This document shows positions 4,395 through 63,409 of a stretch of DNA of 64,000 bases, piece after piece. Every line of letters starts with the position of its first letter. The first letter of the stretch is position 1. The DNA comes from Macrostomum hystrix (lineage: Eukaryota > Animalia > Platyhelminthes). Location of the stretch: positions 930,001 through 994,000 of the forward strand of contig CATNEN010000028.1 in NCBI GenBank assembly GCA_950097015.1. The letters are read 5' to 3'. Made by a program: the position numbers and the translations under genes. Under the pieces are notes generated by a model. It was not told the DNA's origin and did not search any database. It worked only from the letters and a program-made list of their open reading frames with translations.

Positions 4395-6035
4395 CAATCT
4401 CTCCCCTGTCTCATCTCTCCCGTGTCTAATCTCTCCCGTGTCTCATCTCTCCTGTGTCTAATCTCTCCCGTGTCTAATCTCTCCCCTGTCTCATCTCTCC
4501 CGTGTCTAATTTCTCCCGTGTCTAATCTCTCCCGTGTCTAATCTCTCCCGTGTCTAATCTCTCCCCTGTCTCATCTCTCCCGTCTCATCTCTCTCGTGTC
4601 TAATCTCTCCTGTGTCTAATCTCTCCCGTGTCTAATCTCTCCCGTGTCTAATCTCTTCTGCCTATCTCATCTCTCTCCCGTGTCTAATCTCTCGCGTGCC
4701 TCATCTCTCCCGTGTCTAATCTCTCGCGTGCCTCATCTCTCCCGTGTCTAATCTCTCCCGTGTCTAATCTCTCTCGTGTCTAATCTCTCCCCTGTCTCAT
4801 CTCTCCCGTCTCATCTCTCCCGTGTCTAATCTCTCCCGTGTCTAATCTCTCCCGTGTCTAATCTCTCCCGTGTCTAATCTCTCTCGTGTCTAATCTCTCC
4901 CCTGTCCATCTCTCCCGTCTCATCTCTCCCGTGCCTCATCTCTCCCGTGTCTAATCTCTCCCGTGTCTAATCTCTCCTGTGTCTAATCTCTCCAGTGTCT
5001 AATCTCTCCCGTGTCCCATCTCTTCTGCCTATCTCATCTCTCTCCCGTGTCTAATCTCTCCCGTGCCTCATCTCTCCCGTGTCTAATCTCTCCCGTGTCT
5101 AATCTCTCCCCTGTCTAATCTCTCCCCTGTCTAATCTCTCCCCTGTCTAATCTCTCCCCTGTCTAATCTCTCCCCTGTCTAATCTCTCCCCTGTCTAATC
5201 TCTCCCCTGTCTAATCTCTCCCCTGTCTAATCTCTCCCCTGTCTAATCTCTCCCCTGTCTAATCTCTCCCGTGTCTAATCTCTCCCGTGTCTAATCTCTC
5301 CCCTGTCTAATCTCTCCCCTGTCTAATCTCTCCCGTGTCTAATCTCTCCCGTGTCTAATCTCTCCCCTGTCTAATCTCTCCCCTGTCTAATCTCTCCCGT
5401 GTCTAATCTCTCCCGTGTCTAATCTCTCCCGTGTCTAATCTCTCCCCTGTCTAATCTCTCCCCTGTCTAATCTCTCCCCTGTCTAATCTCTCCCCTGTCT
5501 AATCTCTTCCGTGTCTAATCTCTCCCGTGTCTAATCTCTCCCCTGTCTAATCTCTCCCCTGTCTAATCTCTCCCGTGTCTAATCTCTCCCGTGTCCCATC
5601 TCTTCTGCCTATCTCATCTCTCTCCCGTGCCTCATCTCTCTCCCGTGTCTAATCTCTCCCGTGTCTAATCTCTCCCGTGTCTAATCTCTCCCCTGTCTAA
5701 TCTCTCCCCTGTCTAATCTCTCCCGTGTCTAATCTCTCCCGTGTCTAATCTCTCCCCTGTCTAATCTCTCCCGTGCCTCATCTCTCTCCCGTGTCTAATC
5801 TCTCCCCTGTCTAATCTCTCCCCTGTCTAATCTCTCCCGTGTCTAATCTCTCCCGTGTCTAATCTCTCCCCTGTCTAATCTCTCCCGTGTCTAATCTCTC
5901 CCGTGTCCCATCTCTTCTGCCTATCTCATCTCTCTCCCGTGCCTCATCTCTCTCCCGTGTCTAATCTCTCCCGTGTCTAATCTCTCCCCTGTCTAATCTC
6001 TCCCCTGTCTAATCTCTCCCGTGCCTCATCTCTCT
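4395..6035. repeat. 16-bp pyrimidine-rich minisatellite (GTCTAATCTCTCCC[G/C]T)
   Basis: Direct tandem repetition with interspersed variant units. Confidence 0.95.
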
Positions 6036-7780: not shown

Positions 7781-9321
7781 TCAGACTCGCACATTGCGTA
7801 GCCGAGCAAGCCGCAGCTCTCGCTCGAGCATCTCCAAGTCGTCATAATACCTGCCGTAGTAGTACGGGTAGTAATGCGAATAATAGGGATAATAATAGTA
7901 GGGATAATAGTAGGGCCTGTACGGCCGGTAGGGCGAGCCGCTGCGCCGCAAAGTGTCGGCGACTCGTTCGTGTAGGCCGGACGAAGTCAGGTTGGGGTAG
8001 CGCTCAGCCAGGCTCGGTCGAGACGGCGAAGGCGATGGTGACGGAGAACGCGGACGGGCCGGCGCCGTGGCCGACGTTGAACGACGCAAATCGGCTGCCG
8101 AGCGACTTCGCCGGATGCGGCCGCCACCGCCGCTGCTGCCGCCGACAGTTCCGCTTTTCGCCTTCGTCTCTCCGAAGTTATCGTGAAACATCGGCGTGCG
8201 GCCAACCAGCGAGTTCTCTACTCGGCGAACAACAAACGGCGGCCGACCGTTCGACATCGCCGCGGACGATTTCGCCGTCCTGGTTGACGGCTCGTCGAGA
8301 TCATCGCAGAGGGCCTTCAGGCGAGGACTCGGCGAGCGCGAACGCATCGCTGCGGCCAGGGTCTGCCTCTCGTAGTTGTTTGACCCAGCGCCGCCGCCGC
8401 CGCTGCCACCATTACCTGACTGTCTTGATTTTCGAGATCTGGATCGCGACCGCGACCGGCGTCCACCTTCGACTCCAACGGAGCCGTTGGTGGTGGACAG
8501 CAGCCCGCCGCCTGGCAGCAGCTCCTCGATGGCGGCGTAGGTGGCGAACTCCAGCCTGGGCGGAACTCCGGGGAAGTCAACGGTGCGGGTCATGAGGAGG
8601 TCGCGAGTTGCCGAGTGGCTGGTCCGACCGGCCAGGGGACCAAAGAAGTCGCGACAGTTGGTCTCATGATAGGCCAGGAGGCAACCGCCCAAGTAGATAT
8701 CGGTCACCTGTTAAAGTAGCGAGAGGTTGAGATCTAGCCATGTGAGGGATGTTTTCAGCTCTTGTAGATACCGACATTATATAGACGCTGTCGGGGTTGA
8801 GGTCGGGGGTTCGATTCCCGACTTCAACTGGAACAATTTGAGTCCCTTAGCAATACTTTAAAACTCTGCTTAAAGCAATGCTTTATTTCTCTCAGAAATT
8901 GTGTTGGGGGTACTTGAGGTTTTGTGGCGTTCCCTTTCCCCCAGTCCATGGACAGAACAGCGCAGCTTTCAGATGCGCCACGCAATAGCTGGGGCTGTGC
9001 TGTGGGCTGTATAATCAATTATTATTTCAATTATTAAAATATACGCTAACAAACCTGTCTGAGCTCCAATGTCACTGGCGCGTCAGCCAGAAGGTCGGCC
9101 ACCACAAAGGCGTCCTCGGCCGTCCAGAAGATTCTTTCAAACTGGAAGCGCTCGCGCACGCACAATGGGAAGGCGGCCTCGAGTAGGCGAGTTCGCTTAG
9201 CTTGACCGAAGACCACCACAACCAGGAATAGGTCGTCACGGATTGGCAGACGAGTGCCAGGCGATGAGACAACATCCAGCGTCAGCTCTAAGGTGCATTT
9301 GAATCCGCCGGCGCTAGACAT
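7781..9321 (-). CDS. SPATA6: Spermatogenesis-associated protein 6-like; join(complement 9055..9321, 7781..8707), ~397 aa
   Basis: The N-terminus (FKCTLELTLDVVSSPG...DDLFLVVVVFGQ...FPL...FQFERIF...TLELRQ|VTD...LAYHETNCRDFF...TRDLLMTRTVDFPGVPPRLEF) matches the SPATA6 N-terminal domain pattern from memory. A GT..AG intron at 8708-9054 joins the exons in phase 0. Confidence 0.85.
8785..8870 (+). mobile_element. Truncated tRNA-derived SINE inside the SPATA6 intron
   Basis: B-box GGTTCGATTCC at 8808-8818, followed by GACTTCAACTGGAACAA...CTTAGCAA, similar to the copy at 18393. Confidence 0.55.
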
Positions 9322-11369
9322 TGTTCCGCTGCGGAGTAGTTGCGGTTGTAATTATGTTTCTCAGTTTTTTTTGTTTACCGAATCCTTTTTATTGAAATAA
9401 TTAGATTTTTCCTAAACTCATTGTGTACTTCCGTGGTATTTACCGCTGGATATGAAATTATGATAAAATCCCTGCCATTTATTTATAAAACGTGTTACTA
9501 CGCCGTGTCAAAAATTATAAGAAGCTCGTTTGCAAAAGAGAATATTAAAATTATCATAAATATTTTTTGTGTTCTATGGTTAATTTTTTAAATAATCTTA
9601 TATAAATGACAATATAGTAATTAGTATACTAATATGTTGATTACTATGCCTATATATCCGTTTCTGTTTCAAGTTTAGGTCTAAACCAACTTTAAATTAG
9701 TTCTAACATACATATAAAAATATTATATGATAAAAACTTTCTATAAGTTCTATAAGTATAAAACTTGCTTTCTATAAATAAATGCAACAATTAGGAACCG
9801 GCCAGGGGACCAAAGAATAACAAAGCATATAAGAAAGCATAACAACAGAGGAAACAATACGAAAATATGTAAGCCAATATCAAGCGTGCTAATTTATATC
9901 TATCTGGATAAAATAATAAATAAAGATATCCGCACCACAAATTAAACAAGTCTATATATATGAGTCATACAGTCATACGGCTAATAAAGTTAAACTCAAG
10001 CGCAACTTTAATGATAGTGATAACTGTGTGTGGAAAAATTTACACAAGATACATAGTTTTCTTTGGCCAAACTCAATTAATATACACACTGGGGCTGACC
10101 AAAATGTTGTAAAAAGAATAAGGTTCTAAAATACAGGGAAATCGAAATGATCACGATGCCCAATAATGAAAGAACGTCCTGTCAGAATGGATGCTCCAAC
10201 TTCCGTTATATTAATAATCTTACGGAAAAGGTAAGTCAGAGATCTATTAAAAAATCTGAAGTCAGTTGGTTGTCAGGTGACAAAATGAAATTAATTTTCT
10301 AAATAACATTAAAGTTCTAGTTATTATTAAAATATAATTTCTAGTATTTTACGGCGTTCAAATTAAAATATTTTGTTACTCTCTTGTTTTAGGAGCTACT
10401 AATTTGTTTAAAAGAAATCACGAGCATTCCGTACATGATTGTGGGAAAGCAATCTTTCATATCGATGATATGAGAAGTGTAGTTGAAAAAAATGTGTTTC
10501 AATCGTAGAGACCATCATTACTGAAACATTAGCGTGAATTAATTTAGGGTTTAAAACCAAAGTTTTCGATGTCTTTAATTAAATCCTATATGATGGAAAA
10601 AAAACTAGAAAAAAGTGAACCTTAAAAAGCAGGAAGCATTTCCTACCCTTCCGAAGCTAAAAACGCGCATATCTTCAAAATATGTACCCCAAACGCTCAC
10701 TAACGATGAATATAAATAGAAGTTCATGCCGAGAATCTTAATATTTCTTATTTTTTTTAGGAAATTCCTGCATATAAATAATCCAATGAGCGACAATTTA
10801 TTCGGAAAATTATATGGTTGTTTTTGCTTGATCGGAAAGTAGTATATTAGACTATGAAATTTTTTCGTAACAGGACCGTCATAGCTTAAAATGTAATTTT
10901 AAAATAGTATATGTATCCAGATCTGTTTCTCGTAGATTAATTCAAGCAAAAAAGCGGAAAGGAAATTTCTAGCGCGCTGATATGTACAGAGAGTTCGAAT
11001 CTATAGCTGTACATGTTTTACAATTTTTGCGAAGGAATAGCTACGAGCAAATCTTTACGTCGGTGCAATTCAAAATAGCGACGAAGGCCTATCTAATTAT
11101 TTAGGTGCAGGTAATAAATATCATGGTGTCAAATTTCATATATAGCTAATTCGTAACGTTGGGAGAGGATCTTAGAAAGTTTTAATTGACTTTATCATAG
11201 AAATATACCCACTTAAAAAGAAACAGAAGCTGACATCTAACATGACAGCTGCTTTAACAGCATCTCACGTATCAAATCCATTATAAAAAAGGGCATACTG
11301 GCGATCAAAATAATTCGCAATTGAAAGCCCAGTACACGCCACGATTGCACTAAGCAGATTGTTAAATAT

Positions 11370-11981
11370 TCATTCGCAATAGACCCAGAAGGCGGTGGCG
11401 CTCGCTCTGAATGTGGGCCTGTCGAGCGAGCCGGTCACAAAGTCGTCGGTCATGGAGTCGGTCACGGAACGAGAGGCCAGCTGCAGCATCTGCTCGCACT
11501 TCTGGGCGATGGTCACGTGGACGATGATCTTGTAGCGAGGACAGTTGAAGTTGTTCTTCATCCTGCGCTTCACATCCTCCGAGACCATCTTGGCCAACTT
11601 AGGACAGGCCTTCGGGTCGTACTTGGACTCGCCGAGGAAGAACTTCAGGCTGTTGTCGACGATCTGGCGCACCTCGGCCGGCGGGAACTTCTTGGTCGAG
11701 TCCGGCTCCAGGCGGTACGTGTTCTCCATCTTCTTGACGGGCCGGTTCCGCCGCTGCCTCGCCCGGATGTCGCCGATTCGCTTCTTGAGCATCATGAGAG
11801 TCGCCAGGCTCGGCTGCTTCGGTCGAGGCGTCCCGCTGGCTGCTGCCGCCTTCGGCTTGACCGGTGCCTCGTCTCCGTGCTGAGCATCTGGCGACCCCTT
11901 GCCGGCGGCGAGTGTCGGCCTCTGCAGCTGGCTGGGACTCGGCGCCGACACCGTCGAGATTCGCTTCTTGTTGCTGCTCAT
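11370..11981 (-). CDS. TCTEX1D1: Tctex1-domain dynein light chain, 203 aa, intronless (left copy)
   Basis: Motifs MENTYRLEP...KFP, YDPKAC..L.K..SE.VK, PRYKIIVHVTIAQK..Q and SR...D..TDDF are typical of the Tctex-1 domain with a basic N-terminal extension. The exact subfamily (TCTEX1D1/TCTE3/D4) is uncertain. Confidence 0.88.
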   Translation of the reverse strand: MSSNKKRISTVSAPSPSQLQRPTLAAGKGSPDAQHGDEAPVKPKAAAASGTPRPKQPSLATLMMLKKRIGDIRARQRRNRPVKKMENTYRLEPDSTKKFPPAEVRQIVDNSLKFFLGESKYDPKACPKLAKMVSEDVKRRMKNNFNCPRYKIIVHVTIAQKCEQMLQLASRSVTDSMTDDFVTGSLDRPTFRASATAFWVYCE

Positions 11982-12138
11982 CGCTCAAACGCAGGCTGAG
12001 CAGGTCAGTTCGAGTTTGATTACAGAACCCACTCTGAATGAGAAATGCTCAATGTGGCACTATCTTACTAAACGCAGCTTTTGTGACAATTGGTATGTCT
12101 GAAATTCGCTGCTTCAGTTTAGTGCGGGCACGCTAACC

Positions 12139-12152
12139 GTTGCCATGGCTAC
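12139..12152. promoter_or_regulatory. RFX X-box upstream of the left Tctex gene
   Basis: GTTGCCATGGCTAC has one mismatch to the palindromic X-box GTTGCCATGGCAAC and lies ~160 bp upstream of a ciliary gene's ATG. Confidence 0.65.
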
Positions 12153-12582
12153 CCACTGTCTTATCAGCTGTTTTAGCCTAGAAATCGGGAGTGAGCCGAA
12201 ATTTTCAGAACAAGCACAGCACACAATCAATGAGACTTGAGTTGCATACTGGCTGAGTCCTGCGCTCTCATTTCCTAAAACACTGCCATTAAGCAAGTGA
12301 GTGGTGTCAGCCTTTAGTACACTTTTTAGTTGCCTTGTGCCACTTACAAGTGTTATTGCGGTGACTATCAACTCTTACAAATTTGATCAATAGAGCCTTA
12401 AGTGCAAAAACAGCTCACCAGAAAAAAACTGGTACAATTTTCAAAGGTGCCGCAAAAAAGAAAACTGATATTTACGCTTCAAGAAAACAAATCTGAAAAG
12501 AATCTGAAATATAGTTCAATGGTCGACCAGACGCTCAGGACAATGTTTACTATAAAAGTACACGATGCGAATGTTGAATCCA

Positions 12583-13719
12583 TCAGTCGGATGGCATTGC
12601 AACCCGGTTCGTGCGAATAACGAATGCCAAGTTGCAGAGCATTGCTGGCACGTCCAGGTAGTCAGTCTCCCACAGGACACTGCTGGATGTAACCACCCAG
12701 AACAGAGCCCAGAAGTAGGCGAATTTCATGTTGTCCAATGCGGCCTCCTCGGAGAATGGCACCGGGCTGCCAGTCTTGGCCTCGTAGATCTGCTTGAAGG
12801 TCCTGTAGAACTCTCTCGGGATCCTGTCCGCGTGCTCCAGCATGGCCTCAGTCGGCAGGCTGGAGACCATCAGCAGGCCGAGGTCGAAGCCGAACAGTCC
12901 AATGTCCCAGAACTGCCAGTCGAAGAGGCGGCAAATCAAGCGGTTCTCGGAGCTCTTGAACATGAAATTGGAGAACCAGAGGTCGCCGTGAACAACACCA
13001 ATCGGCCGATCTCCGCAGCTGGGCAATGCGCTGGCGGTGTCGCGAGTCATCTTCTCGACAAATTCCTTCAGAATGGCAGAGATCACTTCTTCGTCGAGCT
13101 TTGTCTTGACTCGTTTGCTCAGATTGGCTGAAAAGTACTCAGAATTGCGCAGTATCATCGGTCGGAAATCCATGCCACTCTTTTTCACACTGTTGGTGAA
13201 GAATGTGTCCGAGCCGAACAGCACGGAGTCCAGAGAGTGGTTGAAGTTCGTCCGAGCGATCCAGAACGCGGCCTGCAGTCTGGCCAGAGTCCTCACAACA
13301 CAATAAGCCTGCTCGATGCCGAATGACTTCCGGTCGATGAGGTTGAAGCCTTGCTTGGTCATGTCCTCCATTATCAGAATGGTTCCTTTGTCGCTGATCT
13401 TCTGTCCGAACGCTTTCGGGAAAACGGGCTCGATATTGTACTGGTTCATGACGCGCTCGAGCACCGGCGCCATCAGACCGTAGAACACGACCTCCGTGCG
13501 GCAGAAGTGATTGCTGACCTGCTGCAGTTGATCTAGCTCATTGCGAGTGGCATCGCTCAGTTTGACGAAAACGTGCAACGGCGGCGAGTCTGCTCTCGTG
13601 ACTGTAACAGACCTGCGAAAGCTGAGGTAGCCGCCCTGGCCAACGACTTCCATTTCCTGTGAAATCTCATCGCTTGACTTTAAATTGAATAGTCGAGCTA
13701 ATTCTGCTTCAATGTTCAT
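12583..13719 (-). CDS. Ecdysteroid kinase-like (EcKL/CHK, choline/aminoglycoside kinase fold) copy 1, 378 aa, intronless
   Basis: HVFVK (ATP-binding Lys), RTEVVFY, ILIMEDM, Brenner motif HGDLWFSN and metal-binding FDWQ, followed by a FDLGLLM helix. Confidence 0.88.
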   Translation of the reverse strand: MNIEAELARLFNLKSSDEISQEMEVVGQGGYLSFRRSVTVTRADSPPLHVFVKLSDATRNELDQLQQVSNHFCRTEVVFYGLMAPVLERVMNQYNIEPVFPKAFGQKISDKGTILIMEDMTKQGFNLIDRKSFGIEQAYCVVRTLARLQAAFWIARTNFNHSLDSVLFGSDTFFTNSVKKSGMDFRPMILRNSEYFSANLSKRVKTKLDEEVISAILKEFVEKMTRDTASALPSCGDRPIGVVHGDLWFSNFMFKSSENRLICRLFDWQFWDIGLFGFDLGLLMVSSLPTEAMLEHADRIPREFYRTFKQIYEAKTGSPVPFSEEAALDNMKFAYFWALFWVVTSSSVLWETDYLDVPAMLCNLAFVIRTNRVAMPSD

Positions 13720-13964
13720 TCTTTAATTACGCTCGTAAGTAGACTTTAATCAGCAAACTAAAACTAGTCACTGTACAAATAATTGCCTAGACTGGTGTCA
13801 CTTTATAAAGCGTCTGACTTATCACCTGTCCGATTTCAAGCAGCCATTTGGCATGAGGGCGATATGAGCTGATGACCTGCGGCCCAGTTGGTTGCAACTT
13901 GCAATGGCTATCGGCTAACTCACTGGAGTTACAAGTACCAGAAATAGAGTGCTTAAAGTTTAAA

Positions 13965-14955
13965 GTAGAGTGTCTGCAGGTCTCTCACAGGAGTAGAGTG
14001 TCTGCAGGTCTCTCACAGGAGTAGAGTGTCTGCAGGTCTCTCACAGGAGTAGAGTGTCTGCAGGTCTATCAAAGGAGTAGAGTGTCTGCAGGTCTCTCAC
14101 AGGAGTAGAGTGTCTGCAGGTCTCTCACAGGAGTAGAGTGTCTGCAGGTCTCTCACAGGAGTAGAGTGTCTGCAGGTCTCTCACAGGAGTAGAGTGTCTG
14201 CAGGTCTCTCACAGGAGTAGAGTGTCTGCAGGTCTCTCACAGGAGTAGTGTCTGCAGGTCTCTCACAGGAGTAGAGTGTCTGCAGGTCTCTCACAGGAGT
14301 AGAGTGTCTGCAGGTCTCTCACAGGAGTAGAGTGTCTGCAGGTCTCTCACAGGAGTAGAGTGTCTGCAGGTCTCTCACAGGAGTAGAGTGTCTGCAGGTC
14401 TCTCACAGGAGTAGAGTGTCTGCAGGTCTCTCACAGGAGTAGAGTGTCTGCAGGTCTCTCAAAGGAGTAGAGTGTCTGCAGGTCTCTCACAGGAGTAGAG
14501 TGTCTGCAGGTCTCTCACAGGAGTAGAGTGTCTGCAGGTCTCTCACAGGAGTAGAGTGTCTGCAGGTCTCTCACAGGAGTAGAGTGTCTGCAGGTCTCTC
14601 ACAGGAGTAGAGTGTCTGCAGGTCTCTCACAGGAGTAGAGTGTCTGCAGGTCTCTCACAGGAGTAGAGTGTCTGCAGGTCTCTCACAGGAGTAGAGTGTC
14701 TGCAGGGCTCTCACAGGAGTAGAGTGTCTGCAGGGCTCTCACAGGAGTAGAGTGTCTGCAGGGCTCTCACAGGAGTAGAGTGTCTGCAGGGCTCTCACAG
14801 GAGTAGAGTGTCTGCAGGGCTCTCACAGGAGTAGTGTCTGCAGGTCTCTCACAGGAGTAGAGTGTCTGCAGGTCTCTCACAGGAGTAGTGTCTGCAGGTC
14901 TCTCACAGGAGTAGAGAGTGTTTGCAGGTCTCTCACAGGAGTAGAGAGTGTTTGC
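13965..14955. repeat. 28-bp minisatellite (AGAGTGTCTGCAGGTCTCTCACAGGAGT)
   Basis: About 35 tandem copies, with a block of the GGGCTCTC variant at ~14700-14820. Confidence 0.97.
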
Positions 14956-15460
14956 AATGCCATGCTGCGTACGGTTTTCGAAGTGCGCCGTGGCCCAGGC
15001 AGCGAGACCAGCGCGGCCCTCTACGAAAGGGCGCGCTTGACGCCTGAGCGGGCGGCGACTTTGACTGGCTGGTGACGTCATTTGGTCGGAGGCCCACTGC
15101 CCTGAGCCGCTGCATGACGTGCTGCTGCTCAAGCTGCAGAGACCGCGCAGGCGAGGCCAAGGGCAAATAGCAAGATACCCTGACTAGCTATTGCTGATGC
15201 TGGCGCCCCGGACAAAGCAGGGGGTAAAAAAATGATAACATTTGCTGGAGGGCTGAGGGTTCTCGCAATCAAATGATTTCAGTAAACAGGCAGCCAGTGA
15301 GGAGGCAACTCTCCCCAATTTGCTTGACTCCTGAGCACACACGCACATGGATACTTTAGGCAGGCACGCAGTCACACAGGTGTATAAATCTGCCGTGAAT
15401 TTTTCATCGTCAGGCAGTGTACACTCTCACTATGCCTTGGAGGTTGGCGCTCAAGGGGCA
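14955..15460 (+). mobile_element. Decayed non-LTR retrotransposon 3' end (RTE-like C-terminus plus 3' UTR)
   Basis: Frameshifted translation NAMLRTVFEVRRGPGSETSAALYERARL / LSGRRL*LAGDVIWSEAHCPEPLHDVLLLKLQRPRRRGQG resembles the post-RT 'LY...RRLRLAGH' region of RTE-group LINEs. Positions 15290-15457 recur inverted at 24505-24663. Confidence 0.6.
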
Positions 15461-16216
15461 AATCGCACGACAAACGTCCAAGCCTTCTCTCCGTTGCTGC
15501 GCCCCAAATGAATCGAGCTCAGGGACCTTAGTGCGAGAGGCAAACACGTTAGACCGCTCACTAACCCCCAGGTGGTGTGATTTTTTAGATCGATGGCCCA
15601 GACTGCTCAGAAAAGCTTGAAATAAGACACCACCAGTGTCAAAAAGCTTGATAGTGTGAATCCAGTGCAGTTTGTGGCACACTTCAACTTATCCACCTTT
15701 GATTTAAGAGCACTTTTAATCTGATTTTCTGAGAGGGGGAATCAGAGCGAATCTGATTCATTAGCTCTGGTTTGATTGGGAATGGGAGCAGATGTAAAGA
15801 GGCTGTAGCAGATCAGCCATCTCTTCCCTATTAAAAAGATTGGGGTATCCAAGTAGCCAGCATAAAACACCAGGCTATTCCAGAGAATTTTGAGTGATAA
15901 TCAATGGCTAATTTCTAAAATTCTGTTAAATTCATGAAAATTGCTTTGTGCATGAGGAGCACAACTATCTTATCTGAAAAGTATGCAGCTTTGGTGAACC
16001 ACTTGGCCATGAGCCTTCGGGACAAGACACGTGGCATAAGTATACCTTGGCTCCAAGCAGCAATCAAGGGGTCCGAGCACTTCTTCGGTTATCGCTGGGC
16101 TCCTGCGATAGCGTTATCAAATCGGAGACTATAAACTGGGAAATAAGGACAAACCTCTGGAGGACTCTCGAGTTTTAAGTTTCGCAAAAAATTATTCTTT
16201 AGAACAGGTGATTAAA

Positions 16217-17353
16217 ATGGACATTGCTGAGGAGTTAAACCTGTTGTTCGAACTGAAGTCCGATGGCGAAGTCGATCAGAGCGATGAGATGTTTCGCAAG
16301 GGTGGCTACATGAGCTTTCGCAGGGCAGTCACGATCACGAAGAAAGGTGCGCCTCCGCTGCACGTGTTCGTGAAATGCAGCGACGTGACGCGCCCTGAGC
16401 TGGATCAACAGCAGTTCCTGAGCTTCTATGTCTGCCGCACCGAGATCGTGTTCTACGGACTGATGGCACCGGTGCTCGAGCGAGTCATGAACCAGTACAA
16501 TATTGAGCCCGTGTTCCCGAAAGTGTTCGGGCAGAAGATCAGGGACAAAGGTACTATGCTGGTGATGGAGGACCTGTCGAAGCAGGGATTCACTCCCGTC
16601 GACCGAAAGAATTTCGGCATCGAGCAGGCTTATTGTGTTGTGAGGACTCTGGCCAGACTGCAGGCCGCGTTCTGGATCGCTCGGACAAACTTCAACCACT
16701 CGCTGGACTCCGTGCTGTTCGGCAAGGAGTCGCCATTTAGCGACAGTGTGAGGAAAAGCGGCATGGATTTCAAGCCCATGATCGAGCGTAACTCCAAGTA
16801 CTTCTTTGACAACTACAAAAAGTATGTGAAGTCAACTGAGGACGCCGAACTGATTCAAGAATATGTGACCAAGTTTATCGAAATCCTGGTGGACGATCCG
16901 ATGAAGGGCATGCCCTGTCTTAACGATGAAGCACTTGGCATTTCCCATGGCGACCTCTGGTTCTCCAATTTCATGTTCAAGGGCGAGGGCGACGGCATGA
17001 TCGCTCGACTGTTCGACTGGCAGTTCTGGGACATCAGCATCTTCGGCTTTGACCTTGGCCTGATGATGGTGACGAGCCTGTCAACAGAGGCATTGCAGGA
17101 GCACGTGGACAAAATCCCGAAGGAGTTCTACAGAGTGTTCAAGGAAATCTACGAGGCCAAGACTGGCAACCCGGCGCCATTCACGGAGGAGGCCGCGCTT
17201 AGAAACATGGGCCAGTCACTGTTCTACTCCATGTTCTGGGTGATCGGCACATGCGAACTGATCTGGGAAAGCGGCAACATCGACGTGCCCAACATGCTGG
17301 CCAATGTCGCGTTTGCCATTCGCACAAATCGGGTCAAGCTGCCCGCATTCTGA
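16217..17353 (+). CDS. EcKL kinase copy 2, 378 aa, intronless
   Basis: ATG at 16217 (MDIAEEL) aligns with the paralog starts. HVFVK, MEDL, HGDLWFSN and FDWQ are intact. Confidence 0.88.
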   Translation: MDIAEELNLLFELKSDGEVDQSDEMFRKGGYMSFRRAVTITKKGAPPLHVFVKCSDVTRPELDQQQFLSFYVCRTEIVFYGLMAPVLERVMNQYNIEPVFPKVFGQKIRDKGTMLVMEDLSKQGFTPVDRKNFGIEQAYCVVRTLARLQAAFWIARTNFNHSLDSVLFGKESPFSDSVRKSGMDFKPMIERNSKYFFDNYKKYVKSTEDAELIQEYVTKFIEILVDDPMKGMPCLNDEALGISHGDLWFSNFMFKGEGDGMIARLFDWQFWDISIFGFDLGLMMVTSLSTEALQEHVDKIPKEFYRVFKEIYEAKTGNPAPFTEEAALRNMGQSLFYSMFWVIGTCELIWESGNIDVPNMLANVAFAIRTNRVKLPAF

Positions 17354-18392
17354 TGTCTATTGAAGCCAAGAAGCATAACAGGGACATACATGTGCTTCAT
17401 TTAACTTTTTTTTAAACATTTAAATTCTTAGAAATGTTTTTTTGTAGTAGTGGAGGAACTTTGTTTAATTTTTCAATACAGAGTTCTTCATAGTTTTTAG
17501 AATGTACAATTACACGCTCATTAAGAAAAGTTCGTTTCGACCTGTGTTTTTTACTCTGACTTATGCATGCCTTTAGTGCGTGAAACAGCAATTATGGAAA
17601 AGTTTATCAACTATTTATTCTTGTGATTTAGGAGAGAGGTTGCTCGAAAAGGTGAAAGTTCACGCATTGCTTCAGCTGTTGTTGATAAAGACAGTGTTGA
17701 GAATTGAGATCGCGTGAGCAATCACAGGATCTGTGGCGCCACTCAGTCGTCTCTGATTGAACTCAGAGCTTTAGCAGCTCGGTGGGGCACATGACAAGTT
17801 TGTTCAATTATCTGCCATAAAGAAAGCTACCAAAGACACTAGCCGCTTCAAGAGACTGCAGTTCGATCACCAAAGGCTAGGAAGCGTTTTGTTGGTGACC
17901 CCTAAATCGTTTACCATTCGCATAAACTGTTCGATTTGAGTCTGATAGCATTCGCCAATTCATGCCTCTTAAGGTAAGATCAATGCGTACTTCATTCGGG
18001 CAGATTAGGTCTTAGACTGCGAATGTCTTTGACTTAGCTTGAATCTGTTGCACTAACAAGACCACTATAGAAATAGCAGCGTATATGCTAGCGACTTCAG
18101 TAGTCATATTGGCGTTGCGGCGTCTACTACAAGTAGTGAAGAGTGAGAAAGTCAGTTCTACGATTTACGAATTCGTAGATCGGAACAGAATCACCAAAAT
18201 GGATGCTATTAAAAATACACTTTGGCCTTATAACCTAGACCAACCTTGGCCTAGTCATTTGAACTACAAATTCAATATAACAATTCAGGATAGCACAGAA
18301 TGATGCTTTTCATAAACAGAAAAGTACCGAATATATCATTGTTATTTTTGGTTAATAATATAATAGGTCAACATACTATAGGGTTGTAGTTC

Positions 18393-18600
18393 GCGCAGCC
18401 CAGTGGTTAGAGCGTCGGACCACGACGTGAAAGTCGTGGGTTCGATTCCTGACTTGACTGGAAAAAGTCGTGTTCTTTAGCAAGAAACTTAGCCCTGCAT
18501 TGCTTCAATTCATTCAGCTTTTAACTTGGTACTAGCATCAGCCGGTTTACTTGAGGGTCGGTGCGTCTTCCCACCAGTGGACTACCAACTGGGGCAGGTG
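18393..18600 (+). mobile_element. tRNA-derived SINE (most complete copy)
   Basis: A-box-like GCCCAGTGGTTAG and B-box GGTTCGATTCC (18439-18449), then a conserved body (CTTTAGCAAGAAACTTAGCC...CAGCTTTTAACTTGGTACTAGCATC) shared with 8785 and 40845. Confidence 0.65.
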
Positions 18601-19140
18601 TAATGAATTATTTTATTATTCTTATTATTAATTACTAGAAGGTCCATATTGCTTTTATGGGTCTAAAGCAACAATGGCTCCAAGACTGCAATCGGAAATG
18701 CGACTGTATTTGTCTGAATCAGTGAATTAGCGAATACACACAAACTTCTTTAGCTGTATCACATTTTCTAGCTTTCGAGTAATGCAAACCTATTTGCAGG
18801 GTATTTGACCGCCTTCGATGTGTAGAGTGTATGGGACAAGTAGCTAAAATAAAGCACTGTTGTGTATCGGTAAGGACGCTCCGTGTATCAACATGACTGT
18901 CGAAACACTGCACTTTTAACTCCAGTTTCTACAGCAAAACTAGCTGGACTTGCTTTCGGCACAGCAAGATATCTCGTCTTCCTCCTGAAATCCGCTAAAT
19001 TGTAGCTCAGAAGATTTCGAAACACAAGCAAACCAGTCCTTCGTTGCGCGTTTTCAAATAAGTAGTCACACAAGGACCAAAGAACAAGCAATTGCTTGGC
19101 CAAGTTAGAATTCTCCACAATCGAGCCTAATCACAGCACA

Positions 19141-20285
19141 ATGGACACGGTGGCAGAACTGATTCGCCTCTTCGGTCTGAGTTCAAAGGACGAAATCGAA
19201 CAAGGAGAAGAGGTGTATGGACAGGGCGGATACCTCAGCTTTCGAACAACAGCAACAATTAAAAAGAACTGTTTGATGGAGCTGCACATCTTCATCAAGA
19301 GAAGCGATCCAACTCGCAATGAGCTAGATCAACTGCAGCAGCTCACAATCACTTCTGTCGCACCGAGTGCGTGTTTTATGGTTTCGTTGGGCCGGTACTC
19401 GAGCGAGTCATGAACCAGTACAATATCGAGCCCGTTTTCCCGAAAGCGTTCGGACAGAAGATCAGCGACAAAGGAACCATTCTAGTGATGGAGGATATGA
19501 CCAAGCAAGGCTTCAACCTCATCGACCGGAAGTCGCTCGGCATCGAGCAGGCCTACTGTGTTGTGAGGACTCTGGCCAGACTGCAGGCCGCGTTCTGGAT
19601 CGCTCGGACGAACTTCAACCACTCACTGGACTCCGTGCTGTTCGGCAAAGAGTCTCAGTTTATTGACTGCATCAGAATGAGTGGAGTTGACTTCAAGCCA
19701 ATGCTGAAACGGAATTCAACATATTTTCTGAGAAACCTTGGCAAGCACGTGCAATCCAAAGAGGACGCGCAGATTATTCGAGAGTATGTCAATCGGTTCA
19801 TAGAAATATTGGTGAAAGACCCAATGAAGGGCATGCCTTGCCTTGCTGACGAGCCTGTCGGACTGTCTCATGGCGATCTCTGGTTTTCGAACTTCATGTT
19901 TAATGGCTTCAGTGAGGACATGATCTGCCGACTGCTTGACTGGCAGTTCTGGGACATCAGCATCTTTGGCTTGGACCTAGGTCAGCTGATGTTTACTAGC
20001 TTGTCATTCGACGCCATGCAGGAGCACGTAGACAAGATCCCGAAGGAGTTCTACAGAGCCTTCAAAGAGATCTACGAGGCGAAGACAGGTAAACGGGTGC
20101 CATTTTCTGTGGAAGCAGCCATGGGAAACATGGGCAAGTCGCTGTTCTACGCCTTGTTCTGGGTCATTCGCACTGGAACCCTGCTGTGGGAGAGCGGCAA
20201 CATCGATGTGCCCAACATGCTGGCCAACGTTGCGTTCGCCATTCGCACCAATAGAATCAAGCTTCCACATTCGCTGATTGAATAA
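19141..20285 (+). pseudogene. EcKL kinase copy 3 with a single 1-bp deletion at 19345/19346 (pseudogene or assembly error)
   Basis: MDTVAELIRLF start. CAGCTCA^CAATCACTTCTG versus paralog CAGGTCAGCAATCACTTCTG; the downstream frame 19371..20285 is intact with HGDLWFSN and LDWQ. Confidence 0.8.
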
Positions 20286-21066
20286 CAGTTATTGATAAAG
20301 CAGTTTTTTATGGAAATATTAAATTATAGAAGCTGACCTATTAACAAGTAAGGCCCTAGCTTGTAGATGCAGAACGCGTACTGAATGGTTTTCATAGTTT
20401 CCTATTTTATCTCTATTTATTGCTTCATTGCGATCAACAGGATGGAGCTGCTTTGCCAATATCGAGCATTAATTTCTGCTTCCCGCAAAACTTATCTCAA
20501 CTTACTCAATAAACTCAACTCAACTCAATAAAAACAGGCCTCTTATAGCTGTACAATGATTTTCGCCTACTACCTCGTGAATAAGTTTAGGGGATACAGA
20601 AATAAAAAATCCAGTAATAGGCATCCGAAACTCTCTGAAACCGATTGTTAAAATTCGTGTATTTCCTCCGTCCCGAGAGTGCCCTTGGAGCATACGCTTA
20701 ACACTCTACTTTATAAGTAGTCAGTCAATTTGGGAAGAAAAAATGTAATTATTGTGAGCTGTTCTCAAGAAAGAAGAAATAATTTCTTCTGCGACTCAGT
20801 TAACCTCTAAGTGACACACAGCAGACCAAAAAACTGTTGGCACTTTAATGACGCCCGAACGCGCAGCCAAAGGCGATAAAAAACTTTCGGCTCAAAAGGG
20901 CTAAAAAAGCAAGAGCTCGTGAAGTTCATATCTTATCGACGAGACAAAATAATTTAAGCTTCAACTGTCAAGAGTTGAATATTCGCACCGAAGTCGATTC
21001 GCAAATAGGACAATAATACCGAAGCGCCCAGCGGACAGATTCACAAAAGGTCATCTGACAGCACAA

Positions 21067-22209
21067 ATGGACATTGCCCAAGAATTGACTCTACTGTTCG
21101 GTCTCAAGTCCGAGAGTGACATAACCCAAGGCGGTGAAGTATTTGGCCAGGGTGGCTACCTCAGCTTCCGCAGGCCAGCTACGATCAACAAAGAAGGCGG
21201 CCCGCCGCTTCACATCTTTGTTAAATCAAGCGACGTGTCCCGCTCAGATCTCGACCAGCTGCAGCAGGTCAGCAATCACTTCTGCCGCACGGAGGTCGTG
21301 TTCTACGGTCTGATGGCGCCGGTGCTCGAGCGCGTCATGAACCAGTACAATATCGAGCCCGTTTTCCCGAAAGCGTTCGGACAGAAGATCAGCGACAACG
21401 GAACCATTCTAGTGATGGAGGACATGACCAAGCAAGGCTTCAACCTCATCGACCGGAAGTCATTCGGCATCGAGCAGGCCTACTGTGTTGTGAGGACTCT
21501 GGCCAGACTGCAGGCCGCGTTCTGGATCGCTCGAACGAACTTCAACCACTCACTGGACTCCGTGCTGTTCGGTCGCGAGTCACCATTTAGCGACCGCGTC
21601 AGAAAGAGCGGCGTTGACTTTAAGCCTCTGATGGCGCACAATATTAACTACTTCTTTGAGAACTTGGACAAGCATGTCAAGTCGCCTAAGGATAGTCAGG
21701 TTATTCAGGAGTCCGCCACGAAGTTCATCCAAAGCCTGATCGAGGACCCTTTGAAGGGAATGCCGCAATTTACACACGAACCAGTGGGTCTGTCACATGG
21801 CGACCTCTGGTTCTCGAACTTCATGTTTCAGGGCGATGGCGAACACATGATTTCTCGCCTGTTCGACTGGCAGTTCTGGGACATCAGCATCTTCGGCTTC
21901 GACCTAGGTCTGCTAATGGTCTCAAGCTTGTCGACTGAAGCAATGCAGGAGCATGTCGACAAGATACCGAAGGAGCTCTACAAAACATTCAAGGAGATCT
22001 ATGAGGCCAAGACTGGCAACCCGGTCCCCTTTTCCGAAGAGGCCGCACTGGGCAACATGGCCCATTCTCTGTTCTTCGCCATGTTCTGGGTCATTATTAC
22101 ATGTACTCCGCTGTGGGAGAGCGGTCACGTGGATGTGCCCAGCATGCTGGCCAATGTAGCGTTCGCCATTCGTACAAAGCGCATCAAGTTCCCGTTCGAT
22201 AAGAATTGA
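21067..22209 (+). CDS. EcKL kinase copy 4, 380 aa, intronless
   Basis: Same motifs (HIFVK, MEDM, HGDLWFSN, FDWQ) and full length. Confidence 0.88.
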   Translation: MDIAQELTLLFGLKSESDITQGGEVFGQGGYLSFRRPATINKEGGPPLHIFVKSSDVSRSDLDQLQQVSNHFCRTEVVFYGLMAPVLERVMNQYNIEPVFPKAFGQKISDNGTILVMEDMTKQGFNLIDRKSFGIEQAYCVVRTLARLQAAFWIARTNFNHSLDSVLFGRESPFSDRVRKSGVDFKPLMAHNINYFFENLDKHVKSPKDSQVIQESATKFIQSLIEDPLKGMPQFTHEPVGLSHGDLWFSNFMFQGDGEHMISRLFDWQFWDISIFGFDLGLLMVSSLSTEAMQEHVDKIPKELYKTFKEIYEAKTGNPVPFSEEAALGNMAHSLFFAMFWVIITCTPLWESGHVDVPSMLANVAFAIRTKRIKFPFDKN

Positions 22210-23089
22210 ATTTTGTTAATTTTTTTTAGCGCGACAGACATTCTACAAGCTAATTACTGGTGCAGTACAGTACAGTCAGTGACATTGAATTAATACACAG
22301 GTTCCGTGTCTAGGTAATCATTCTGCAAAATATCTGATAGTTCGTTGAGATAACGAGCTATCTGCAAATTAACCGTTTGCTTTCTAAATCTTTTTAATAT
22401 TTACTTTGTGAGGCATTGGAAAATGATGGACGATATACTCGTACAGTTCGATCTTAGTAAGTTCGATCTAGCAAATCGCTTAAATTGGTTTGACGATAAA
22501 TAAAAAATTGGCAGTGAAGTATCGAACGGTTTAGTTAGTAAATTACGCTTTTTAGACTAGGTTGCAATCACGAAATTTTTTTCATGAAAAATCTACTACT
22601 AAAATTGACACACGGACTAAAAATGAACACAATTGTTGTTCCAGCAATTATTCGATACTGATGAGCTCTCTAGAATGATAAGAGATAATAGAATAGTCAA
22701 GTCAAGCGAGGAGACTCTCTGAGACTGGCAGTTAAAAGCTGCATTATGACTGTCACGCGGGCTGTTTGCGCACACAAAATATATGCCTCGGCATTGGCAA
22801 ATAGGAAAACACTGCCTGTATCTCGCGAGCGGATAGCATTGCGCGCAGACTCCGCTTCGCATCGGCAATAGGGAGTTAGCCGATGTCAAATGTTTACCCT
22901 AGCCTTTTGTGCTCAGCTATCAAGATGCGAGAGAATACTGCACCAGTTCCCATGGAGTCTCGCTCTATCCCTGAGCGTACAATGCTGCCAAGTCGTTGGC
23001 ATGAATAAAATGCCATGCAATCGCACAGACTAGAAAGTCAAGGGCAAGCGTTGCTAGTATTGTACCTCGAATTGTCAATTATTTGAGCG

Positions 23090-23701
23090 ATGAGCAGCAA
23101 CAAGAAGCGAATCTCGACGGTGTCGGCGCCGAGTCCCAGCCAGCTGCAGAGGCCGACACTCGCCGCCGGCAAGGGGTCGCCAGATGCTCAGCACGGAGAT
23201 GAGGCGCCGGTCAAGCCGAAGGCGGCAGCAGCCAGCGGGACGCCTCGACCGAAGCAGCCGAGCCTGGCGACTCTCATGATGCTCAAGAAGCGAATCGGCG
23301 ACATCCGGGCGAGGCAGCGGCGGAACCGGCCCGTCAAGAAGATGGAGAACACGTACCGCCTGGAGCCGGACTCGACCAAGAAGTTCCCGCCGGCCGAGGT
23401 GCGCCAGATCGTCGACAACAGCCTGAAGTTCTTCCTCGGCGAGTCCAAGTACGACCCGAAGGCCTGTCCCAAGTTGGCCAAGATGGTCTCGGAGGATGTG
23501 AAGCGCAGGATGAAGAACAACTTCAACTGTCCTCGCTACAAGATCATCGTCCACGTGACCATCGCCCAGAAGTGCGAGCAGATGCTGCAGCTGGCCTCTC
23601 GTTCCGTGACCGACTCCGTCACCGACGACTTTGTGACCGGCTCGCTCGACAGGCCCACATTCAGAGCGAGCGCCACCGCCTTCTGGGTCTATTGCGAATG
23701 A
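23090..23701 (+). CDS. TCTEX1D1: Tctex1-domain dynein light chain, 203 aa (right copy, inverted relative to 11370..11981)
   Basis: The protein is identical to the left copy except M/V in VTDS[M/V]TDD. Confidence 0.88.
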   Translation: MSSNKKRISTVSAPSPSQLQRPTLAAGKGSPDAQHGDEAPVKPKAAAASGTPRPKQPSLATLMMLKKRIGDIRARQRRNRPVKKMENTYRLEPDSTKKFPPAEVRQIVDNSLKFFLGESKYDPKACPKLAKMVSEDVKRRMKNNFNCPRYKIIVHVTIAQKCEQMLQLASRSVTDSVTDDFVTGSLDRPTFRASATAFWVYCE

Positions 23702-24122
23702 ATATTGTTAAACTAAGTTAACAACTTGGGGTATTCAAAATCAAGAAACACTTTGAAGCCAAATTAAACAGCTACAAATTTACTTTAATTAACACCAATT
23801 GAAAATACATTAACATTGACCATGTCGCTTTGTAAAGCGTATGCTTCATAGGTTATAACTTATATTTCTAACACATCAATAGCGATTTCAAATAGAATCA
23901 TGAGTAATCATTTGTACAAGCGAGGAAAGGCAAATCAAATCATAGCGACAGAGCACAGTGAGCGAATGGCAACAACTTTGAGATAACCAGGCAATCGATA
24001 CACAAGATAAACAAACCACAATAATTTGAGAAGAGATTAAATTTGAAAACTAAATTAAAAATTCCGATTTCCACACTAGAAGGAAGGCACAGACAGGGAG
24101 GGGACGCATTGTGATGCAACTG

Positions 24123-24338
24123 TCAGTAGAATAGTACACAGACAGCCATGACTAGGCAGCAGCAGGCCACGTAGGGCGACTTTCGCTCGCCGATGCGGGC
24201 GCACTTCCAAAAGATTCCGGGCAGGCCGGTCTTGTAGCGATCAATCAGTCTAGGAAATAGGTGGCGGAAATAGGCGCAGGTGCAAATTAATAGTAGAACA
24301 ACGGTTAGCAAGGATTGAAAGTTGAATACGGCCGACAT
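24123..24338 (-). CDS. TMEM167: Protein kish (TMEM167), 71 aa, intronless CDS
   Basis: [23 protein letters not shown]...[27 protein letters not shown] is the characteristic kish sequence. Confidence 0.95.
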
Positions 24339-24504
24339 GATTGCTTTTGGAGAGGCTGCAAATGAAACGGAAATTAGATTATTCATTTCAGTAGATACAA
24401 AACGCGTTTGCCTCTCGCGCCAAGGTCCCCGAGCTCGATTTCGCGGCGACGCCACTTTCATTTGGGGCGCAGCCGCGGAGAGAAGGCTTTGTGATCATTT
24501 TACG

Positions 24505-24815
24505 CCCTTGAGGGCTAACCTCCAAGGCACAGTGAGTGTACACTGCCTGACGATGAGAAACTCAGGGCAGATGTACACTCCTGTGTGACCGTGCGTACAG
24601 TATCTGTGTGCGTGTGTGCTCGGGAGTCAGCGAAATGGGCAGAATTGCCTCTTCGCTTGCTGCGGGTCTAGTGTCAGCAAATGATGTTCCATTGCCCACA
24701 GCCCTCGTGCAATTATTGTTATTGTTAGGGAATAAGTGTAAAGGTCGTAGTTTTGAATCCATCGAGATTGGAATCGAACTCCTGACCTTTTGGCCCGAAG
24801 CTAAAACCACTAAGC
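24505..24815 (-). mobile_element. tRNA-headed SINE with a LINE-related tail
   Basis: Minus strand reads GCTTAGTGG (A-box)...GAGTTCGATTCC (B-box) at ~24815-24770. The 3' ~160 bp is homologous to 15290-15457. Confidence 0.5.
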
Positions 24816-25184
24816 AAAAAACCTTAGAGGATATGTTAAATCGACTGAAAAAAATAAAATAAACAACTAATGTTTCATTACAAATTAAACTAGAAGCTTA
24901 TAAAAAACAAGCAAGCAATAGTTCAATTATACGATTTATATTTCTTCTTGTCTACTAACATTCAAATAATAACAAGCAGAGAACAATAGCAGTAATGCAT
25001 TTTTTATGCAAAATAACTACACTTTAAGGTTGACTTATTTATTTGCTAACAATCTAACAGACTCTCCTATGTCCACAATAGGATAGCTTTACAAAGTTTA
25101 AAAAATGGGAGCGGCTAATCAAAACAAGACTAACAGGAAGGCTGGCATTTAATTGATATGGCCATGACAGGGTTATGAAGGAAG

Positions 25185-25475
25185 CAGCCAATAAAAATTT
25201 TGATAGGGGTAGGAGGGTGGCAGCCAATTAAAATGTGGATAGGGTTAGGAGGGTGGCAGCCAATTAAAATTTGGATAGGGGTAGGAGGGTGGCAGCCAAT
25301 TAAAATGTGGATAGGGTTAGGAGCGTGGCAGCCAATTAAAATTTGGATAGGGGTAGGAGGGTGGCAGCCAATTAAAATTTGGATAGGGGTAGGAGGGTGG
25401 CAGCCAATTAAAATGTCGATAGGGGTAGGAGGGTGGCAGCCAATTAAAATGTCGATACGGGTAGGAGGTTAGCAG
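25185..25475. repeat. 36-bp minisatellite (GATAGGGGTAGGAGGGTGGCAGCCAATTAAAATTTG)
   Basis: About 8 copies between MRPL37 and kish. Confidence 0.9.
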
Positions 25476-25635
25476 CTAATCATAATGAGAGGACAGTAAG
25501 AAGATGAAGGCTATATTATAATTTTCTGCTTTTCACCAACCACTTCAAATTCCGAAAAAATTCGTGATCAAAATAAGCGATACAAATGCAACGCGAATCC
25601 CGGTGAAAACTCTTAGTCCGAAATAAAGAACACTC

Positions 25636-63405: not shown

Positions 63406-63409
63406 CTTG

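Follow-up and report, generated by a model that had tools for sequence, protein, structure and literature searches.

Palindromic gene pairs and concerted evolution

In Drosophila, the amylase genes Amy-p and Amy-d are palindromic copies a few kb apart, whose coding sequences (CDSs) are near-identical via ectopic gene conversion (PMC3924832). The 5' and 3' flanks of these genes evolve independently (Hickey et al., 1991; Shibata and Yamazaki, 1995, reviewed in PMC3924832), and a multi-species comparison has shown that the duplication predates speciation (PMC3924832). The heat shock genes Hsp70Aa/Hsp70Ab and Hsp70Ba/Bb are likewise tightly linked, mirror-image paralogs homogenised by conversion (Bettencourt and Feder, 2002, via PMC3924832). 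Here, the inverted orientation permits conversion without deletion, and for both the Amy and the Hsp70 palindromic pairs concerted evolution is confined to the coding sequence (PMC3924832). A literature search on how coding and flanking regions evolve in concert also brought up the HMA4 triplication of Arabidopsis halleri (PMC3749932) and the KRTAP1 genes (bioRxiv 10.1101/282418).

Gene layout of the locus

The locus described here lies in the flatworm Macrostomum hystrix, within the window, i.e., the whole stretch of 64,000 nucleotides that was analysed. The genome is assembled at chromosome scale, with 220 Mb in 42 contigs, and positions 9000-27000 of the window contain zero Ns. The features are as follows:

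Left arm of the inverted repeat, 11365-11989, minus strand: intronless Tctex-L CDS (11370-11981, 203 aa) with 8 nt upstream, TTTGAGCG, and 6 nt downstream, AATATT
Left spacer, 11990-12582, minus strand: EcKL1 stop to Tctex-L; single-copy in the genome and unalignable to the right spacer
EcKL1, 12583-13719, minus strand: 378 aa; mirror partner of EcKL4
EcKL1 side of the second tract, 13270-13524, minus strand: alignment columns 196-450; 97.6% identical to EcKL4 21262-21516
EcKL2, 16217-17353, plus strand: 378 aa from the ATG at 16217; tandem paralog
EcKL3, 19141-20285, plus strand: tandem paralog; frame shifted by a 1-nt deletion near 19345
EcKL4, 21067-22209, plus strand: 380 aa; directly upstream of Tctex-R
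EcKL4 side of the second tract, 21262-21516, plus strand: dS 0.067 compared with >1 elsewhere
Right spacer, 22210-23081, plus strand: EcKL4 stop to Tctex-R; single-copy in the genome and unalignable to the left spacer
Right arm of the inverted repeat, 23082-23706, plus strand: intronless Tctex-R CDS (23090-23701, 203 aa); 5 of 625 nt differ from the left arm

The profile matches bear out the order and orientation given in the preliminary description, Tctex(-) EcKL1(-) EcKL2(+) EcKL3(+) EcKL4(+) Tctex(+), with the one correction that EcKL3 is probably a pseudogene owing to its frame-shifting deletion. The Tctex ORFs belong to Tctex-1 (PF03645, E 5e-20), and the match of 72 bits, compared to a Pfam gathering score of 22.8, covers profile positions 1-95 of 95 with residues 103-198 of the protein. 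Their nearest solved relatives are DYNLT2B and the outer-arm LC2 (E 2e-12 to 3e-10). The four neighbouring ORFs are EcKL genes (PF02958, EcKL / CHK kinase-like, E 1e-25 to 1e-31) and all of them score 89-110 bits against a gathering cut-off of 22. For EcKL4, the closest public relative is a protein of Macrostomum lignano with 80% identity.

Each Tctex copy is preceded, at a distance of 0.6-0.9 kb, by a kinase-like EcKL gene of the same orientation. This mirrored layout is confined to the locus, the other Tctex paralogs having no EcKL neighbour, and all four members of the Tctex subfamily are intronless. The interior between the arms measures 11 kb and holds three further genes. An extension of the arms into the next genes was ruled out by a SPATA6-like exon at the left and an MRPS30-like exon at the right. 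Short inverted matches (I9-I11, 15315-15550 / 24401-24639) were also rejected as an extension of the palindrome, since they have another symmetry centre; they belong to a dispersed repeat of ~330 nt with thousands of copies.

The inverted repeat of the Tctex genes

A repeat search of the window revealed an inverted repeat with arms of 625 nt (11365-11989 / 23082-23706), which are 99% complementary and separated by 11,092 nt. Both Tctex ORFs are intact and lie within this repeat, which exceeds the CDS by 8 nt on the 5' side and by 6 nt on the 3' side. The preliminary description had counted about five differences between the two 612-bp CDSs, and exactly these five were recovered by alignment and base-by-base comparison. 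Three of them are synonymous (GAC/GAT in codon 37, GCA/GCG in codon 39 and CCT/CCC in codon 127). The remaining two fall in codon 177 (ATG/GTC), where M177V is the sole amino-acid change. This corresponds to a dS of 0.025 and a dN of 0.003.

The limits of the identity are sharp. It begins at TTTGAGCG 5' of the ATG and stops at AATATT 3' of the TGA, and from the next base on it is at chance (~25%) on all four sides. Within the 10-100 nt adjoining each arm edge, the base-by-base comparison gave 15-28% identity, again chance level, so that the abrupt stop reported earlier is real. Furthermore, the N-terminal ~55 residues are identical between the two copies and are unalignable to the two other paralogs, which lie on contig C2. 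This indicates that the near-identity does not stem from purifying selection.

Between the left and right spacer there was no blastn match at E<1e-3, and the Smith-Waterman score was 11 compared to 12.4 +/- 1.4 for dinucleotide shuffles, in agreement with the earlier impression by eye that the spacers do not align. Each spacer and outer flank occurs just once in the genome, by which transposon insertions were rejected as the source of the unalignable spacers, and the alignments of these regions score no higher than those of shuffles. A recent simple segmental duplication, which would show in spacers aligning at high identity, was likewise rejected, because the spacers are unalignable and the flanks of the Tctex genes are unrelated.

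Near-identical repeats are known to cause assembly error, and one Tctex copy might therefore be a false duplicate or have been homogenised by read mis-mapping during assembly or polishing. Had one copy arisen by false duplication or by a haplotig join, however, its flanks would have been carried along, and here they are unique and unrelated. The five differences including one amino-acid change, the match of the identity limits with the gene ends on both sides, the absence of Ns from the region and the chromosome-scale assembly also speak against such an artefact, which is hardly credible.

A second tract in the EcKL genes

The mirror partners EcKL1 and EcKL4 are saturated at synonymous sites, with a dS of 1.09 in the N-terminal part and of 2.12 in the C-terminal part. 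In comparison to the Tctex pair, this amounts to a 40- to 80-fold contrast in dS. Within these genes, a tract of ~255 nt in the middle of the gene (columns 196-450) is 97.6% identical, compared to 65.8% nucleotide identity elsewhere, and a perfect run of 140 nt is found at 13388-13527 / 21259-21398. The pair shares 32 consecutive polymorphic sites (p <= 0.0002, Sawyer-type permutation test). The same test gave p <= 0.0002 for EcKL1 and EcKL3, and the central block of EcKL3 is 91-93% identical to those of EcKL1 and EcKL4.

The EcKL1/EcKL4 tract, which starts and ends within the CDS, is a second, independent arm-to-arm conversion. Together with the permutation p values, it shows that the inverted arms of this locus do undergo conversion with each other.

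The codon composition fits to this. GC3 amounts to 0.87 for the Tctex pair compared to 0.73-0.75 for its paralogs, and to 0.79-0.82 for the EcKL block compared to 0.68-0.71 in the rest of EcKL1/EcKL4. Raised GC3 in the sequences considered converted is in keeping with GC-biased conversion, and it could also mirror an expression-linked codon bias.

Concerning the age of the EcKL copies, the M. lignano protein nests among the copies of the window in both N- and C-terminal EcKL trees. This position hints at a split of the EcKL copies older than the species split, while the AU tests, which are not significant, do not reject the monophyly of the four copies (p 0.12-0.21, with 0.13 and 0.21 among the values). 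For Tctex, word searches with the whole protein and with the domain alone found no orthologs in other species.

Origin of the near-identical Tctex copies

The near-identity most likely goes back to interlocus gene conversion, limited to the surviving homology, within an old inverted duplicate of an EcKL-Tctex unit. Here, an ancestral EcKL->Tctex pair would have been duplicated long ago in inverted orientation, and the EcKL gene of the right arm would have been amplified in tandem afterwards. The neutral DNA around and between the genes would then have diverged past recognition, while recurrent non-allelic conversion across the inverted copies would have kept the two Tctex CDSs nearly the same. 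A conversion tract would extend only as far as homology survives, so that the Tctex identity would drop sharply where the conserved unit ends. This unit would comprise the Tctex CDS and a few adjoining bases, among them a possible trans-splice acceptor (TTTGAG). The EcKL partners would mostly have escaped conversion, except for their most conserved central ~255 nt, which would still be exchanged among EcKL1, EcKL3 and EcKL4.

Recurrent arm-to-arm conversion of an old duplicate, as proposed in the preliminary description, is thus the best-supported reading, given the dS of 0.025 next to saturated EcKL genes and the second tract. The silent sites of the Tctex pair are far more similar than the age of EcKL1/EcKL4 would imply (dS 0.025 vs 1.1-2.1), an age which applies to Tctex through the inferred co-duplication. 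We infer this co-duplication of Tctex with EcKL from the layout only, no residual non-coding homology being left. Conversion would have been recurrent rather than one recent event, and its donor would have been DNA.

Had homology simply eroded until the selected region was left, a looser fit of the tract to the gene would be expected. Both limits lie <=8 nt from the ends of the CDS, despite the weakly constrained N-terminal half of the protein.

Alternatively, just the Tctex coding segment could have been duplicated recently, for example by template switching or as a retrocopy of a short trans-spliced mRNA, with the copy landing by chance downstream of another EcKL paralog. The copies would then be young and conversion would not be needed. 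For a young duplicate a dS of 0.025 would be expected, and all four subfamily members being intronless would suit a retrocopy. Furthermore, the genome contains many dispersed full-length spliced-leader (SL) exons that do not continue into the SL RNA intron and that possibly represent reverse-transcribed trans-spliced RNA that entered the DNA. Nevertheless, a young processed copy at 99% identity should still bear marks of an SL, a poly(A) tail and a target-site duplication. Local alignment of the 60 nt upstream of either Tctex gene gave no significant SL relic (p = 0.22 and 0.79 vs random windows), no poly(A) run or shared 3' UTR was found after the stops and no target-site duplication is visible at the copies. 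The TCAATTATTTG upstream of Tctex-R resembles the 3' end of the SL by eye and was rejected as a relic, since its alignment score is not above background. In addition, with a genome of 220 Mb it is very improbable that a random insertion would hit the mirror position, on the same strand, 0.6-0.9 kb past an EcKL gene and <12 kb from its source, and the separate EcKL1/EcKL4 tract would be left unexplained. Such a young copy is therefore unlikely.

A further option concerns the donor, which could be the cDNA of an SL trans-spliced Tctex mRNA instead of the other chromosomal copy. For such a donor the identity would begin right at the putative trans-splice acceptor (TTTGAG|CG ATG), and an acceptor-like AG does stand at the 5' limit, 2 nt upstream of the ATG. 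For M. lignano, the published acceptor motif is [T/C]TNCAG (PMC8629364), and the SL exon in the M. hystrix genome is the same 35 nt as in that species (compared with PMC8629364). The dispersed SL exons, if derived from reverse-transcribed RNA, would also suit a cDNA donor. However, the 6 nt upstream of the AG are identical as well, although they would be outron and thus absent from a cDNA, and the 3' limit at +6 after the stop is off the expected poly(A) site, the nearest ATTAAA being at +62 for the right copy and at +184 for the left one. Moreover, both ends of the EcKL tract fall within the CDS, which needs no RNA boundary, and intron loss, by which cDNA-mediated conversion is usually recognised, cannot apply where all copies are intronless. 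A cDNA donor thus seems very unlikely. The broader claim, that the CDS-exact limits mark RNA-templated repair with trans-spliced Tctex cDNA repeatedly acting as donor rather than mere exhaustion of homology, appears slightly more doubtful still. The mRNA- or cDNA-templated conversion raised in the preliminary description accordingly found no positive support in SL relics, poly(A) or the 3' limit. If RNA-templated repair were true, trans-splicing flatworm genomes would homogenise their paralogs through transcripts.

Comparison with known systems

If Tctex was indeed converted between the inverted arms, ages of duplicates in the M. hystrix genome that are based on dS can be badly wrong. The locus is also a natural example in which a single protein would be expressed from two unrelated regulatory contexts; moreover, its 625-bp inverted repeat could flip the 11-kb interior.

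The palindromes of the human Y chromosome (P1-P8) have arms of kb to Mb, which are >99.9% identical including the non-coding DNA and enclose a short unique spacer. The inverted arms and the arm-to-arm gene conversion are in common with the M. hystrix locus, in which, however, the homogenised sequence is limited to 625 nt and a patch of ~255 nt of an arm of ~2.4 kb. A palindrome of the Y-chromosome type was rejected, as spacers and flanks align no better than shuffles and, outside the block, the identity between the EcKL arms amounts to ~66%. Since the arms of the Y palindromes are near-identical including non-coding DNA and those of this locus are not, the analogy to sex-chromosome palindromes drawn in the preliminary description fails.

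The HMA4 and KRTAP1 copies are arranged in tandem, in contrast to the inverted Tctex copies. The Hsp70 genes are closer, as the Tctex copies are also tightly linked mirror-image paralogs; the Hsp70 pairs share some regulatory flank, whereas the Tctex pair shares just 8 nt upstream and 6 nt downstream.

With Amy-p and Amy-d, the Tctex pair has in common the palindromic arrangement, the near-identical CDS and the flanks that diverge independently, with the presumed age of the duplication judged here from one genome. It differs from Amy in being an intronless dynein light-chain gene of a flatworm, each copy of which is paired with a diverged EcKL gene bearing its own partial tract. On the favoured reading, the Tctex pair is a clean new example of the known conversion of the Amy/Hsp70 type and reveals no new mechanism. 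What it adds are limits that are sharp to the single base and a built-in control, the EcKL partners, which escaped conversion save for their most conserved block.

Structure of the Locus

In the assembly of Macrostomum hystrix (220 Mb in 42 contigs), a repeat search of the window revealed an inverted repeat (11365-11989 versus 23082-23706) of 625 nt per arm, which is 99% complementary and has 11,092 nt between the arms. Each arm contains one Tctex-1 gene:

11370-11981, minus strand: Tctex-L, the left copy, ORF of 203 aa, complete Tctex-1 domain at residues 103-198
23090-23701, plus strand: Tctex-R, the right copy, ORF of 203 aa, complete Tctex-1 domain at residues 103-198

Among proteins of solved structure, DYNLT2B and LC2 of outer-arm dynein come closest to them. 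The preliminary description of this locus was borne out in all particulars of its observation. The four kinase-like EcKL ORFs are arranged and oriented as it had proposed, Tctex(-) EcKL1(-) EcKL2(+) EcKL3(+) EcKL4(+) Tctex(+), and a base-by-base comparison of the Tctex arms counted exactly five differences, where about five had been estimated. Three of these affect the third position of a codon (37, 39, and 127) and are synonymous, and two fall in codon 177, which reads ATG versus GTC (Met/Val). The identity is indeed abruptly limited, starting 8 nt upstream of the ATG (TTTGAGCG) and ending 6 nt past the TGA (AATATT); beyond these limits the adjoining 10-100 nt are on all sides only 15-28% identical, which is chance level.

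By blastn self-comparison of window 9-27 kb (word 9, E < 1e-3), arm-to-arm homology is confined to the Tctex and EcKL coding sequences. The spacers between EcKL stop and Tctex ATG, in which no alignment had been seen by eye, yielded a Smith-Waterman score of 11 versus 12.4 +/- 1.4 for dinucleotide shuffles, and the 600 nt 3' of both Tctex genes a score of 12 versus 12.0 +/- 1.4; as a positive control, a 75%-identical EcKL segment scores 185. The outer neighbors are also unlike, with a SPATA6-like exon left and an MRPS30-like exon right of the arms. Since both spacers and 1.4 kb outward of Tctex-L are single-copy in the genome, transposon insertions are ruled out as the cause of the missing flank homology.

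Short inverted matches at 15.3 and 24.5 kb (I9-I11) are not parts of the arms and belong to a dispersed repeat of ~330 nt present in thousands of copies (15228-15550 and 24401-24727; ~2,900 first-look candidates genome-wide, 85-88% identity). The divergent intergenic region of EcKL1 and EcKL2 is occupied by a 28-nt tandem repeat (13964-14946, 35 copies, 97% match), and further arrays have 36-nt units (25184-25487) and 29-nt units (starting at 26700). Extreme strand composition (GC skew -0.60 to +0.42, AT skew -0.44) is present at 4001-6000, 42001-46000, and 62001-64000, which are probably satellite or low-complexity DNA.

Exchange between the Arms

All other genomic paralogs of the Tctex pair are distant, being two intronless genes on contig C2 with 60-65% protein identity, and no EcKL neighbor was found for either. 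The four EcKL genes form their own group, their next relatives on contig C38 being 32-37% identical. The mirrored layout suggests that the EcKL-Tctex pair was duplicated as one unit. For dS between the arms, proposed earlier as a check, Nei-Gojobori estimates were 0.025 for the Tctex copies (dN 0.003) and, for the mirror partners EcKL1 and EcKL4, 1.09 (codons 1-60) and 2.12 (codons 173-378), both of which are saturated. If the pair was duplicated as a unit, the Tctex copies are 40-80 times less diverged than their EcKL partners. Purifying selection cannot account for this identity, because silent sites match too, as do the N-terminal ~55 residues, which are the same within the pair yet cannot be aligned with those of the C2 paralogs.

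When the four EcKL genes were compared in sliding windows, a mosaic emerged, with a block of high identity (alignment columns ~196-450). Here, EcKL1 and EcKL4 are 97.6% identical (dS 0.067) and share a perfect run of 140 nt (13388-13527/21259-21398), while EcKL3 is 91-93% identical to either and EcKL2 81-85% to the other copies; outside the block, identity is 64-75%. Sawyer-type permutation of polymorphic sites gave p <= 0.0002 for both EcKL1-EcKL4 and EcKL1-EcKL3, and p = 0.018 for EcKL3-EcKL4. Since EcKL1 lies in the left arm, in opposite orientation to EcKL2-4, exchange between the inverted arms is demonstrated at this locus. Both ends of the EcKL tract are within coding sequence. EcKL3 (19141-20285) is probably a pseudogene, as its frame is shifted by the loss of one single nucleotide near 19345 (CAGCTCA-CAATCAC), at the block's 5' edge; its block identity indicates that it still joins the exchange.

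As descriptive values, GC3 is 0.87 in the Tctex pair versus 0.73-0.75 in the paralogs, and 0.79-0.82 in the EcKL block versus 0.68-0.71 in the remainder of EcKL1 and EcKL4; EcKL2 has no such contrast between block and rest. A higher GC3 of the homogenized parts is what GC-biased conversion would yield.

Comparison with Macrostomum lignano

The sole public relative found for EcKL4 is a protein of Macrostomum lignano with 80% identity. This fits a Macrostomum source of the DNA, as does the spliced-leader exon described below, and no sign of human DNA was seen. Relative to the window copies, P0002, the M. lignano EcKL protein (378 aa), is a mosaic: over its N-terminal 65 residues, identity is 72% with EcKL1 and 51-54% with EcKL2-4, and over its C-terminal 205 residues 67-73% with EcKL2-4 and 54% with EcKL1. 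Its first 12 residues are the same as in EcKL1, and its C-terminus is like that of EcKL4. In rooted ML trees P0002 groups with EcKL1 for the N-terminal part (support 78/71) and falls within the EcKL2-4 group, with EcKL1 outside, for the C-terminal part (74/79). This chimerism suggests that paralogs exchanged sequence in one lineage or the other, and the EcKL1/EcKL4 split may be older than the species split; a single clade of the four copies was not rejected by AU tests (p 0.13 and 0.21). A word search with the whole Tctex protein or its domain alone found no ortholog in other species.

Spliced Leader and Possible RNA Intermediates

The published 35-nt spliced-leader (SL) exon of M. lignano (PMC8629364) is present unchanged in the SL RNA genes of this genome, which form long arrays on contigs C15, C17, and C42, mostly with a period of ~11.6-11.7 kb. 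Before the ATG, both Tctex copies have TTTGAG|CG, which resembles a trans-splice acceptor, and in the EcKL genes an AG likewise lies a few bases 5' of the ATG, so that trans-splicing, and even co-transcription of EcKL and Tctex, appears plausible. One Tctex copy could be a processed copy of a trans-spliced mRNA, which would be expected to have kept a piece of the SL as well as a poly(A) tail. This is unlikely: when the SL was aligned locally with the 60 nt 5' of each copy, the score stayed at background (p 0.79 left, 0.22 right), no A-run follows the stop, and the closest ATTAAA signals, at +184 (left) and +62 (right), lie in unshared sequence. Since the Tctex and EcKL genes have no introns, a cDNA rather than a chromosomal copy could also have been the conversion donor, but this is more doubtful still, as it would account for the 5' limit of Tctex identity at most, and the mid-coding EcKL tract needs no such donor.

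Apart from the SL RNA genes proper, a full-length SL exon (31-35 of 35 nt) occurs at dozens of sites scattered over the genome, where something other than the SL intron comes after it (loci L017-L024, e.g., G000:C7:8556421, C8:629358, C24:365104, and C38:27887531). Eight of these sites were read, and in four of them the exon continues into a common sequence, which shows that there is a repeat family starting with the SL. This family may be a SINE derived from the SL or may stem from retroposition of trans-spliced RNA.

Concluding Remarks

An old inverted duplication with homology-limited interlocus gene conversion of the Tctex coding sequence is the best-supported reading. The duplication would have given the mirrored arms, and conversion would keep the Tctex coding sequences alike, while the adjoining EcKL genes would have escaped it save for their most conserved block. 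The locus is thereby a caution for dating duplicates in the M. hystrix genome. Of the earlier interpretation, arm-to-arm conversion stands through the dS contrast and the EcKL1/EcKL4 tract; the proposed likeness to sex-chromosome palindromes does not, since the arms are not similar over their whole length, in which the locus differs from a Y-chromosome-type palindrome. It is a known kind of phenomenon in an unusually sharp example.
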